From Macrostomum lignano (taxonomy: Eukaryota), in NCBI GenBank assembly GCA_002269645.1, contig NIVC01003324.1:1-64000 (forward strand): DNA of 64,000 nt, read 5' to 3'. Position 1 is the first letter of the stretch. Each line of letters starts with the position of its first letter. Positions 330-63,483 of the stretch are shown here, piece by piece. The translations under genes and the position numbers were made by a program. The notes below the pieces were generated by a model, which was not told where the DNA came from, did not search any database, and saw nothing but the letters and a program-made list of their open reading frames with translations.

Positions 330-411
330 GGGCCAACCCCCAAGGCACAGTGAAGTGTACTTGCTTAACGATAAATAATAGAGGTAGGGCCGCTGTACAC
401 TCCTGTGTGAG
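330..411 (+). other. Dispersed ~80-nt repeat core, copy 1 (candidate structured element)
   Basis: gggccaacccccaaggcacagtgaagtgtac...gtagggccgctgtacactcctgtgtgag; homologous to copies at 3143, 13264, 27699, 45238 and 63410. Confidence 0.75.
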
Positions 412-540
412 TGTGTGCCTGCGCGTATGTCAGCGTACGTATCCGCGCGCTTGTTTGCCTGCTCAGGGGCGTTGGCGGAATGTGTGATAATGTCGTTTAA
501 AGTGCTCCAGGGTGCACACAGCCCCCTGCCTCTAATAAAA

Positions 541-1143
541 AGCCCATGAACTACTGAACTGCTGAGCCCATGAACTACTGAACTTCTGAGCCCATGAACT
601 ACTGAACTGCTGAGCCCATGAACTACTGAACTGCTGAGCCCATGAACTACTGAACTTCTGAGCCCATGAACTACTGAACTGCTGAGCCCATGAACTACTG
701 AACTGCTGAGCCCATGAACTACTGAACTTCTGAGCCCATGAACTACTGAACTGCTGAGCCCATGAACTACTGAACTGCTGAGCCCATGAACTACTGAACT
801 GCTGAGCCCATGAACTACTGAACTGCTGAGCCCATGAACTACTGAACTGCTGAGCCCATGAACTACTGAACTTCTGAGCCCATGAACTACTGAACTGCTG
901 AGCCCATGAACTACTGAACTTCTGAGCCCATGAACTACTGAACTGCTGAGCCCATGAACTACTGAACTTCTGAGCCCATGAACTACTGAACTGCTGAGCC
1001 CATGAACTACTGAACTTCTGAGCCCATGAACTACTGAACTGCTGAGCCCATGAACTACTGAACTTCTGAGCCCATGAACTACTGAACTGCTGAGCCCATG
1101 AACTACTGAACTGCTGAGCCCATGAACTACTGAACTGCTGAGC
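541..1143. repeat. 24-bp minisatellite (agcccatgaactactgaact[g/t]ctg), about 25 copies
   Basis: Direct reading; explains the SSSVVHGL and WAQQFSSS repeat ORFs. Confidence 0.95.
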
Positions 1144-1699
1144 CGACTCCACACTAAACATGGTTGATTCCCAAATTTTCTCTCAGCAAATAGCCAGCCA
1201 TGCAGATCCACTTGTCCTTGATCGAGAAAAAGTTTCTGTTAATTCCCACCCGAGCTCCAACCCTCCGCCCAAGACTTTTCGAGTATGTTCGAGTAACTAT
1301 AGCCTGCCCCAATCCAGTAGGAATAGCAAAGCAAATGTTTGATTTAAGCCTCAGGGTCTGCTACTGGTTGGGAATCCGGCATATGGAGCCTTGTGGAGAA
1401 GTTCATCTACAAAACTGCTTGATCTGATCGTTAAATTCCATGTCACTGCTAACATCCGAACCCCTAGATTATAACAGTTATCTTCTCATCCTTCTTTCTT
1501 GCGCTGTTTTGTCTCTTCTCTCTTGTCCTGTGTCTCTCTTGAGTGTCTAGTTTTGTATAGATCTCGTCCTGTCTTTCCTCCATTTTTCTTGTCCTTTCTA
1601 TCTTATCTAATCTTCTTGTCTCCTCTTTTCTGTCTTTTATTTGTCTTGCGCGTTTCTCTTTCTTGTCTTGTGCCCCAGCTACCCCAAAAAGTCAATAAA

Positions 1700-2955
1700 T
1701 GTCTGTACGTCTGTCTGTCTGTCTGTCCGTCTGTCTGTCTGTCTGTCTGTCTGTCTGTCTGTCTGTCTGTCTGTCTGTCTGTCTGTCTGTCTGTCTGTCT
1801 GTCTGTCTGTCTGTCTGTCTGTCTGTCTGTCTTTCTGTCTTTCTTTCTGTCTGTCTGTCTGTCTGTCTGTCTGTCTGTCCGTCTGTCTGTACGTCTGTCT
1901 GTCTGTCTGTCTGTCTGTCTGTCTGTCTGTCTGTCTGTCTGTCTGTCTTTCTGTCTTTCTTTCTGTCTGTCTGTCTGTCTGTCTGTCTGTCTGTCCGTCT
2001 GTCTGTACGTCTGTCTGTCTGTCTGTCTGTCTGTCTGTCTGTCTGTCTGTCTGTCTGTCTGTCTGTCTGTCTTTCTGTCTTTCTTTCTGTCTGTCTGTCT
2101 GTCTGTCTGTCTGTCTGTCTGTCTGTCTTAGTGTCTGTCTGTCTGTCTTAGTGTCTGTCTGTCTGTCTTAGTGTCTGTCTGTCTGTCTTAGTGTCTGTCT
2201 GTCTGTCTGTCTGTCTGTCTGTCTGTCTGTCTGTCTGTCTGTCTGTCTGTCTGTCTGTCTCTCTGTCTGTCTTTCTGTCTTTCTGTCTGTCTGTCTGTCT
2301 GTCTGTCTGTCTGTCTGTCTGTCTGTCTGTCTGTCTGTCTGTCTGTCTGTCTGTCTGTCTGTCTGTCTTTCTGTCTTTCTTTCTGTCTGTCTGTCTGTCT
2401 GTCTGTCTGTCTGTCTGTCTGTCTGTCTGTCTGTCTGTCTGTCTTTCTGTCTGTCTGTCTGTCTGTCTGTCTTAGTGTCTGTCTGTCTGTCTTAGTGTCT
2501 GTCTGTCTGTCTTAGTGTCTGTCTGTCTGTCTGTCTGTCTGTCTGTCTGTCTGTCTGTCTGTCTGTCTGTCTGTCTGTCTGTCTGTCTGTCTGTCTGTCT
2601 GTCTGTCTGTCTGTCTGTCTTTCTGTCTTTCTGTCTGTCTGTCTGTCTGTCTGTCTGTCTGTCTGTCTGTCTGTCTGTCTGTCTGTCTGTCTGTCTGTCT
2701 GTCTGTCTGTCTGTCTGTCTGTCTGTCTGTCTTTCTGTCTTTCTTTCTGTCTGTCTGTCTGTCTGTCTGTCTGTCTGTCTGTCTGTCTGTCTGTCTGTCT
2801 GTCTGTCTGTCTGTCTGTCTGTCTGTCTGTCTGTCTGTCTGTCTGTCTGTCTGTCTGTCTGTCTGTCTGTCTGTCTGTCTGTCTGTCTGTCTGTCTGTCT
2901 GTCTGTCTGTCTGTCTGTCTGTCTGTCTGTCTGTCTATCCGTTTGTGTCCGTCAC
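1700..2955. repeat. (TCTG)n microsatellite with variant units, about 1.2 kb
   Basis: Direct reading; ends in a unique 25-nt flank shared with the 7612-7824 array. Confidence 0.95.
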
Positions 2956-3142
2956 GCCTGGATGAGGCAATATTGGGCAAGGCCCAGACCGAATCGATGG
3001 ACCAGCAGCGGTTGACACGCTAAAATTGACTTGCTCAGCTCTGCCTCTCTGCAGATTCTGCGGCTTAATAAAAATGAGAACCTCATCGAATACAAGAGTC
3101 AGGTGACACGAGGCTCACTGACCGAATTCTACAAACTGTTTA

Positions 3143-3203
3143 CGGAGAGTGCACATGCCTGAAGATTTAGAAAGTCAGGGGCCGCTGTACACCCTGTTGT
3201 GAG
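3143..3203 (+). other. Dispersed ~80-nt repeat core, copy 2 (5'-truncated)
   Basis: gagtgcacatgcctgaagatttagaaagtcaggggccgctgtacaccctgttgtgag. Confidence 0.7.
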
Positions 3204-61489: not shown

Positions 61490-61700
61490 CGATGTCTATG
61501 GCCAAATCTGATTTATATGGCCAAATCTGATTTATATGGCCAAATCTGATGTCTATGGCAAAATCTGATGTCTATGGCAAAATCTGATGTCTATGGCCAA
61601 ATCTGATGTCTATGGCCAAATCTGTGGTCTATGACCAAATCTGATGTCTATGGCCAAATCTGATGTCTATGACCAAATCTGTTGTCTATGGCCAAAACCC
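61490..61700. repeat. 19-bp minisatellite (ggccaaatctgatgtctat)
   Basis: Direct reading. Confidence 0.9.
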
Positions 61701-62379
61701 CCAGTTAGCGTTCGTTAGCGTCTAGAGAAGTCGACATGCAGGAGTTTGTAAATTTGGAGGCTCTAAGGAATCGAGATGTTAACTCCAAGTTGTGCTATCA
61801 GAACTCCCTGGCTGGGGGCAACAAGTGGGCCAATCAAAAATTTCCAGCTTATAGTTAGCTATATAGGCCTGGGGAAGTTGAGATGTGGCTTTTGGAAGGG
61901 GCTGGGAAAATAGGGATTAGGAGATGGGGTCGCCGGGTGAACCACCAGTTAGACTGCTGGAGGTCCGGGTGAACTTGAGGAGTGAGAGAGAGGGAAACGG
62001 AGACAGTACAGAGAAATTCACTGCTCAAAAGAGCCGACAGCACAGATATTTTAGACTGAATAGAATAACCAACAATCAGCTTTACTAAACAGGTAGGTTT
62101 CAAGTTTTTAATTTGAATATTTTGAAACTTTTATTAAAAAATCTTTAATACTCAATTTCTTAATTCCAAACTTTAATCCTAATCCAAAAATCTGCATGAC
62201 TAATACTTTATTAATATTCAGACCGCAATCTCTAAAATTTCACTTCAAAACGTAGATACCAAATTTCAAATTCATAATTTCGTATCTTTTGTATTTTCTA
62301 ATCAAAATTTTTTACGCAATAGTATCTATTCCCTAGCTATTTCTTATCCATAATTATTGATCCATAGCCTATAGTCTCG

Positions 62380-62790
62380 AATCTTCAATCTCTAATATCG
62401 AATATCTAATCCCTATTCTCTAATAGCCAATCTCTAATATCCAATCTCTAATATCCCTATTCTCAAATCTCTAATCCCAAATCACCAGTCCCTAATATCT
62501 AATCTTCAATATCTATTCTATAATATCTATTCTCCAGTCTCAAATCTCAAATCTCAAATCTCAAATATCTAATCTCTGATCTCTAATCTATATTATGTAA
62601 TCCCTAATCTCTAATCCCAAATCACTAATCATCAGTCTCTAATATCTAATATCTGATATCGAATCTCCAATCTCTGATCTCTAATCTCTAGTATCTAATT
62701 TCTAATCTCTAATCTCTAATCTCTAATCTCTAATATCTAATATCTAATCTCTAATCCCTAATCTCTAATCCTGAATCCCAAATCCCTGAA
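62380..62790. repeat. Degenerate (ATCTCTA)n heptamer tract
   Basis: Direct reading; runs up to a probable acceptor at 62798. Confidence 0.85.
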
Positions 62791-62814
62791 TCTCACAGAC
62801 GGTACAGGCAGTTC

Positions 62815-63269
62815 ATGGCAGCCACAAAGCTTGCATCAACTGCCCTGCTGTCCACGGCCCTGTCTCTGGCCACAGCCAGCCTGTTATCAGGAGCCTGGCG
62901 CCTGGCACTAGCCGGCAACAGCGGGCACTCCGTCAGCTTCGGCATCTCGGCGGATTACGAGGGCTACTGGGCAGGTGAGCAAATTTTCAGAGAGTTACCC
63001 AATCGATCCTAGCTCGTAAAAAACCAAGGGGAAATTATTGGGGACAATTGAAACAGGAAAAAATCCCCAAAACACGCTATCGATTTCAGTAATCCGATTA
63101 ATCCGCTACTTGGCCGGCCTTGGCAACGTGCTCAGCTGTTTTGCCCTGCTCTGCTCACTGGCTGCGCATTCCAGCCGACTCGAACAGCTCGCCGCCGCCT
63201 GCTGCTGCTGCTGCGGTAACGGTGGCGGTGGCCTTCAAATGTCGAAGTTTCTCTTCGCTTCGCTCGCTG
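62815..63269 (+). CDS. Two exons (62815..62974, 63090..63269) of a probable multi-pass membrane protein (claudin/PMP22-like topology); incomplete
   Basis: Hydrophobic segments ASTALLSTALSLATASLLSGAW and YLAGLGNVLSCFALLCSLAA; a phase-1 GT-AG intron joins them in frame; the next donor at 63270 leads into a repeat-filled intron running off the window. Confidence 0.5.
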
Positions 63270-63409
63270 GTGAGGCTCCAAAAAAATCTTTCGCAATAAT
63301 ATGCGATTTTCTTTTTCATTTTTGTTCGTAAATACTACTAACTAGTAGCGCGTAGTAAGTGTGCACGAGAATTGGTTAGGCGGGTTGTAATGCGATTCGC
63401 AGCCATAAC

Positions 63410-63483
63410 GACCAGCCCCCAAGGCACAGAAAGTGCACGTGCCTGACGATTAGCATGGCAGGGCCGCTGTGCACCTGTGTGAG
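63410..63483 (+). other. Dispersed ~80-nt repeat core, copy 6
   Basis: gaccagcccccaaggcacagaaagtgcacgtgcctgacgattagcatggcagggccgctgtgcacctgtgtgag. Confidence 0.78.

Follow-up and report, generated by a model that had tools for sequence, protein, structure and literature searches.

The 64,000-nucleotide stretch of Macrostomum lignano contig NIVC01003324.1 analyzed here (assembly GCA_002269645.1, positions 1–64,000, hereafter the window) holds six copies of a short element with nested stems, dispersed among 45 minisatellite arrays that occupy 34% of its length. When the arrays are masked, hardly any dispersed family besides this element is left: only a short interspersed nuclear element (SINE) with a tRNA-Val-like head and a foldback repeat of ~400 bp. 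An earlier note on this DNA, made from the letters alone, had placed the six copies, all on the + strand, and the places and strand are confirmed. A profile hidden Markov model (HMM) built from the six copies recovers them and no others when run against the window; all six matches are on the + strand (E-values from 1e-25 to 9e-19), and the next-best nhmmer match has an E-value above 4. A covariance model that includes the stems recovers the same six at 65–98 bits, and the 23-mer GGCCGCTGTRCACCCTGTGTGAG has three matches in the window versus zero expected. The ~80-nt size first given to the unit had to be revised: it is longer, about 100–130 bp, with both ends sharp. Homology begins ~25 nt further upstream, with TGCGATTC, and continues ~22 nt further downstream, ending in GCGTGTGCCTGAGTGC.

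Individual copies differ in completeness and state of preservation. Copy 1 (305–433, + strand; nhmmer E = 2e-24, covariance model 92 bits) spans the whole unit; close to its 5′ end 12 nt are duplicated internally, and its inner loop has diverged. It has a syntenic counterpart in three other contigs (L001, L003, and L004). Copy 2 (3126–3223, + strand; E = 7e-21, 76 bits) is without a recognizable 5′ third and bears a single pair-breaking T-to-C change. Copy 3 (13219–13335, + strand; E = 9e-19, 65 bits), previously listed as a short copy at 13264–13312, is indeed present but proves to be full length, though it is the most diverged of the six; it begins 3 nt past a 20-mer array. Copy 4 (27675–27798, + strand; E = 6e-25, 82 bits) is full length, has a 4-nt insertion in its C-rich loop, and reads GGCACG/CGTGCC where the other copies read GGCACA/TGTGCC. 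Copy 5 (45215–45337, + strand; E = 1e-25, 98 bits), also full length, is nearest to the consensus (87%) and begins 21 nt past a 32-mer array. Copy 6 (63387–63486, + strand; E = 7e-19, 68 bits) carries the double change GTGCAC/GTGCAC and is truncated at its 3′ end, at the start of a 23-mer array.

Outside the limits of the unit, the flanks of the copies are unrelated. Shuffle tests found no sequence common to the copies from −70 to −25 or beyond +22, except in copies 1 and 2, which alone have a further 33-nt 3′ stretch in common (p = 0.003 before correction for ten pairs). When a further 5′ extension was tested, a −25 to 0 segment was common to copies 5 and 6 only (p = 0.013). An extension of the unit past −25 on the 5′ side and past +22 on the 3′ side was rejected because such sharing is limited to single copy pairs. 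As the upstream segment from −70 to −25 is not shared, the six stretches are not gene copies that carry their own promoters. Each copy is 66–87% identical to the majority consensus versus 53–74% to any other copy, a star-like pattern that amplification from a master sequence predicts. Thus, the generic signs of an interspersed repeat are all seen here: common end points, non-homologous sites, and copies that lie nearest to the consensus.

We favor, with somewhat better than even confidence, the view that the six stretches are relics, now decaying neutrally, of a ~125-bp, non-coding, non-autonomous M. lignano mobile element of unclassified type, amplified from a hairpin-bearing master. Its mobility, the role of its hairpin, and any assignment to a class are inferred. 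The nested stems would be a property of the family’s master sequence, where the compound hairpin probably served as a handle recognized by the copying enzyme. Our preferred candidate for this enzyme is the reverse transcriptase of a partner long interspersed nuclear element (LINE), by analogy with SINE/LINE pairs whose members have the same structured tail; the main alternative would be a rolling-circle or other transposase with no need for target duplication. The inserted copies themselves would have no function and would simply be eroding. The earlier note had offered as an alternative that the element might be the core of a SINE or ordinary repeat debris. Of its two explanations this one agrees better with the tests: the units are discrete, lie at unrelated sites, have star-like relationships, and are unconstrained.

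Several characters that would assign the element to a particular transposon class were sought at the six copies. ARAGORN at relaxed settings, which do detect the head of the window’s tRNA-Val SINE, finds no tRNA-like head upstream of the copies; a tRNA-like head or B box that had seemed plausible by eye was rejected by ARAGORN and shuffle tests. The check for target site duplications (TSDs) proposed earlier was negative, with no flanking direct repeats exceeding background at the six copies. There are no terminal inverted repeats (TIRs), as the ends, TGCGATTC... and ...CCTGAGTGC, are not mutually inverted, and none of the six copies has a visible tail, whether poly(A) or simple-repeat. Between the copies, tblastx detects no coding sequence common to the intervals. 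Spurious open reading frames (ORFs) across the element, translated and combined in a single query to look for such frames elsewhere in the genome, had no match in the protein collection at E up to 10. The element was likewise absent from JGI metagenomes and IMG/VR when these were scanned for exact patterns, and a full-text literature search for its sequence yielded unrelated primer coincidences only.

These terminal features also bear on an alternative that we regard as unlikely though worth serious consideration, namely, that the copies derive from a DNA element that ends on one side in a hairpin. Such an element could be non-autonomous, of Helitron/Helentron type, and have tandem arrays inside it, or it could be a very small foldback or miniature inverted-repeat transposable element (MITE). 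The core of the unit consists of two imperfectly inverted ~25-nt arms, target duplications are absent, as they are with Helitrons, the copies stand beside arrays in one orientation, and both foldback elements and hAT transposase genes exist in this genome. Yet besides the lack of mutually inverted ends, the conserved flanks outside the hairpin are asymmetric, and no other end that could partner it was detected in the window. As for Helitron-type ends, CTGAG occurs at the 3′ limit of some copies only, with no consistent flanking T, and no consistent 5′ TC, 3′ CTRR, or A/T target site was seen across the six copies.

The nested stems themselves (CACAG/CTGTG, GTGTAC/GTACAC, and CCTGAC/GTCAGG) are present in copies 1, 4, 5, and 6, where 5–7 of the 6–7 pairs per stem can form, and in the consensus, but are eroded in copies 2 and 3. 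The earlier note described correctly both the double change to GTGCAC/GTGCAC in copy 6 and the single one in copy 2; in copy 2, the change is a recent pair-breaking substitution, because the sister contig keeps T at this site. A 5′ hairpin, also described, amounts to 3 bp only, is missing in copies 2 and 3, and was lost from the sister copy of copy 1. The proposed pseudoknot between the C-rich loop and GGG was set aside: there is no informative variation, no register exceeds 2 bp, and copy 5 alters both putative partners (C to T and G to A). In addition, an alternative outer stem, GGCACR/YGTGCC, draws on the newly found 3′ extension.

Folded as RNA, whole copies do no better than dinucleotide shuffles on either strand (z = −1.75 to +0.79), and their hairpin cores reach only z = −1.0 to −1.9, with 10–24 of 200 shuffles folding equally well. 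Folding is better in the consensus (z = −1.8 for the + strand, −2.6 for the − strand) than in the copies (−1.9 to +0.8), which fits a structure that belonged to the master sequence. DNA folding parameters give z of about −1.9 on both strands. RNAalifold predicts 17 pairs, one of them with a double change, and its covariation term is unfavorable at +0.78.

The earlier note had proposed selection on the RNA fold, either ribozyme-like or as a signal for reverse transcriptase. This hypothesis is unsupported, not disproved, as six copies give low covariation power. In a neutral simulation that scattered each copy’s observed stem substitution count at random, 94.6 ± 2.3 of 114 pairs were kept versus 97 observed (P = 0.20), and ~1 pair was double-compensated versus 2 observed (P = 0.21–0.26), both being low-power comparisons with six copies. 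A tally made on the model-fitted alignment looks better, but it is inflated by two sister copies of copy 1 and by a chance-level match fitted to the structure. Stem substitutions number 8 in the 3′ arms versus 23 in their 5′ partners, an asymmetry that counts against pairing selection, which should constrain both arms alike. A further comparison comes from L001 (NIVC01000176.1), a diverged sister contig that retains copies 1–3 at syntenic sites. Between the window and this contig, 23 of 323 aligned bases (7.1%) have changed in the element, which also has indels, and 69 of 1568 (4.4%) in the flanks; as the element diverges at least as fast as its flanks, there is no purifying selection on the copies. 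The sister of copy 2 has a badly damaged 3′ arm, and the final 38 nt of copy 1 are identical in the diverged contig. Contigs L003 and L004 add no information, since their copies 1 and 2 do not differ from those of the window.

The same results weigh on the idea that the unit is a self-cleaving ribozyme of a new or unrecognized class, or another RNA fold still selected in some copies, which we consider highly improbable. The nested stems recur in four copies, and three double transitions preserve pairing (in stem 2 of copy 6, in the inner stem of the copy 1 lineage, and in the outer GGCACR/YGTGCC stem of copy 4); by manual count, G-U pairs exceed A-C mismatches on the + strand by about 6 to 2, and the string CUGACGA...GAAA is present. 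However, the double changes and kept pairs sit at the neutral expectation, the alifold covariation term is unfavorable, and the sister contigs reveal no constraint. Nor do the copies belong to a known RNA family. Searches of the whole window against Rfam 15, at gathering thresholds and at E up to 10, place no ribozyme, microRNA (miRNA), or small-RNA family at the copies, and twister, pistol, hatchet, hairpin, and the other Rfam ribozyme classes likewise have no match there. With 161-nt inputs around copies 4 and 5, also at E up to 10, the matches are at chance level only (PK-BYV, 11 bits; SCARNA7, 8 bits).

Two ribozyme folds were examined by their architecture. The hammerhead core consists of CUGANGA ... 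GAAA with three helices and cleavage after NUH. We agree with the earlier failure to build one: the spacer between CUGACGA and GAAA is just 3 nt (UUA), which makes helix II impossible, and this, together with the lack of an Rfam hammerhead match at E up to 10, rules the hammerhead out. The fold of ribozymes like that of hepatitis delta virus (HDV) is a nested double pseudoknot in the order P1-P2-P3-L3-P3′-P1′-P1.1-P4-J4/2-P2′. In the element, the long hairpin lies with both its strands downstream of the small 5′ hairpin, which leaves no P3/P1′ segment between P2 and P4; an HDV-like ribozyme was rejected by this unfit helix order, judged by inspection, and by the lack of an Rfam match. Likenesses to 5S rRNA, the miR-124 seed (AAGGCAC), and the MIR core were seen by eye only, without Rfam support, and were set aside.

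Six hairpins of ~60–65 nt on one strand within 63 kb could also be read as a cluster of small-RNA hairpins, miRNA-like or otherwise processed, released from one long transcript with the 3′ arm GCCGCUGUACACCCUGUGUGAG as the mature product. In keeping with this, conservation is highest in the 3′ arm and looser in the 5′ arm, and the loop is of variable length; the last 38 nt of copy 1, unchanged in the diverged sister contig, and the absence of the element from 232 kb elsewhere in the genome (described below) would also suit a local gene cluster. We nevertheless doubt this explanation strongly. The hairpin scores reported above are modest and are matched by some of the shuffles, conservation reaches well beyond the hairpin, copies 1 and 2 diverge from their sisters at least at the flank rate, and the 3′ arm, the supposed product, is wrecked in the sister of copy 2. 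No Rfam miRNA model matches, and the supplementary tables of two small-RNA studies, just one of them on M. lignano small RNAs, do not contain the motif.

Array boundaries lie at three copy ends: at 13216, 3 nt before copy 3; at 45194, 21 nt before copy 5; and at 63486, where copy 6 runs straight into its array. Copy 3 also sits at the left edge of a ~720-bp segment that breaks one 20-mer array family, so that 20-mer arrays flank it on both sides. Other array unit families recur apart from each other in the window: a 24-mer, GGTTGGTTTATGGCCGAGTCTTGG, at 29748, 31264, and 59034, 34-mer arrays at 19270 and 24878, and 32-mer arrays at 44859 and 48116 that have GTCTCAGGTGTGAC in common.

Additional M. 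lignano DNA was obtained from ten loci (232 kb) reached via Piwi proteins from the supplement of PMC8191739. The HMM, the covariance model, and the exact motif detect no copy of the element in these loci; it is thus at least several-fold enriched in the region of the window. The window’s tRNA-Val SINE and its foldback element do occur in the ten loci and behave as ordinary dispersed elements, an indication that mobile elements of this size are active in the genome.

The case for a decayed mobile element has to be set against a number of these observations. A repeat interspersed throughout the genome would be expected to be less local, and the absence of the element from 232 kb in which the two other families are found counts against it. 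Six copies in a single orientation have a chance of 1 in 32. Three of the twelve copy ends fall within 25 nt of an array boundary, with a chance of ~3% each (P about 0.005, a post hoc figure), and such abutment is unforeseen by simple random insertion. Neither is there any hallmark of a particular transposon class (TSD, TIR, tail, tRNA head, or a partner LINE in hand). Clustering, uniform strand, and array association are therefore unexplained by relics of a mobile element, and they keep three minority explanations alive: a cluster of small-RNA hairpins, templated copying in place tied to unstable arrays, and a ribozyme of unrecognized class in the master. The apparent locality may reflect the genome compartment, as the window was chosen for its copies and the other loci are gene-rich.

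An improbable explanation of this local pattern dispenses with transposition: a hairpin-prone segment would have been recopied repeatedly in cis as templated filler during break repair in this unstable, array-rich region, or the hairpin would stall replication and thereby seed or stop arrays. It would accommodate the confinement of copies to this region and its sister contigs among the ~300 kb examined, their single orientation, the lack of target duplications and terminal repeats, the abutment of copy ends on arrays, and the position of copy 3 between two arrays of one 20-mer family. Template switching, however, is not expected to produce the same two end points in several copies, and relationships among the copies are star-like and do not follow neighborhood. 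The array association, moreover, is a post hoc statistic on six copies, and the gene-rich loci sampled for comparison may represent the wrong compartment. A stronger version, in which the hairpin is causally linked to the regional minisatellites as a break-prone or fork-stalling palindrome, recopied locally in one orientation and marking where arrays start or stop, is in our judgment a long shot. If true, it would account for the confinement to one contig family, the shared strand, the missing transposon hallmarks, and the array abutment.

Among the other features of the window, the only long ORF belongs to a DEG/ENaC (amiloride-sensitive sodium channel) gene on the − strand (7831–9315), 99% identical to a Macrostomum lignano protein. 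This gene is found in four assembly contigs (P0001–P0004), which illustrates the redundancy of the assembly. Contigs L003 and L004 are near-identical to the window, and the identity between the window and L001 is 86–94% over 1–7630 and 98–99.9% over 7825–18837. The jump in identity sits just left of the sodium-channel gene and suggests a recombination or gene-conversion boundary between duplicated copies.

The tRNA-Val(CAC)-like SINE lies at 58195–58472 on the + strand and 43085–42808 on the − strand and comprises a tRNA head (Rfam tRNA, 29 bits), called by ARAGORN at relaxed settings only, and a body of ~210 nt. By its sequence it is a tRNA-derived element truly dispersed across M. lignano loci, with further occurrences in L001 (17515–17802), L005 and L006 (about 11100–11360), and L014 (12218–12449). 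The foldback or MITE-like repeat of ~400 bp (47085–47491) has inverted ends of ~75 nt (47086–47155 versus 47488–47409), and copies of it occur in L005–L008 and L011. Just downstream of copy 1, a 58-nt piece (481–538) recurs with 90% identity in L005 (16358–16416) and L006 (16343–16401); it weakly resembles the reverse complement of the element’s 3′ arm and loop (p about 0.02). Finally, L008 carries on its − strand (3225–5965) an 846-residue hAT-type transposase gene (Dimer_Tnp_hAT, DUF4371) that adjoins a piwi paralogue.

The M. lignano genome is more than half repetitive, and a decayed mobile element, if that is what the six copies are, would be one more unclassified short repeat, chiefly of use for the annotation of M. 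lignano repeats. The published M. lignano repeat libraries leave out unclassified models and those under 200 bp (PMC5730564), so the family is probably undescribed so far, though of a familiar kind. If the element proved to cluster locally and to abut array boundaries across the whole genome, it could bear on how this genome makes unusually many minisatellites.

Several known systems resemble the element in part. Repeat-embedded miRNA clusters, such as the primate C19MC, likewise consist of paralogous hairpins on one strand over tens of kilobases with one arm best conserved; the hairpins described here, by contrast, are weak and unconstrained between sister contigs. Self-cleaving ribozymes are carried by a number of retroelements, as exemplified by the hammerheads of Sm-alpha and Penelope and the HDV-like ribozymes of R2 and L1Tc. 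The element is similar to these as a small structured motif in a dispersed flatworm repeat with CUGANGA and GAAA strings, but differs in having no covariance-model match, no helix II or cleavage-site context, and no HDV-like helix order. With MITEs and foldbacks it shares a size of ~100 bp, the lack of coding capacity, and an organization centered on a hairpin-capable inverted repeat; its inverted repeat, however, is internal, its flanks are asymmetric, and its copies have one orientation and no target duplication. Helentron-derived elements that bear arrays include Drosophila DINE-1/DINE-TR1 and the bivalve pearl-type elements. These too have a conserved hairpin-bearing end beside variable arrays and no target duplication, whereas the M. 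lignano element has no consistent terminal motifs of their kind, and the arrays lie on either side of the copies and are mutually unrelated. In stringent-type SINE/LINE pairs, of which eel UnaSINE1/UnaL2 is an example, the two partners have a structured 3′ tail in common. Although the M. lignano element differs from such pairs in its local distribution and in being without a tRNA, 5S, or 7SL head, a tail, target duplications, or a partner LINE in hand, it is, like their short members, a non-coding repeat with a conserved stem-loop module and star-like copies in neutral decay.

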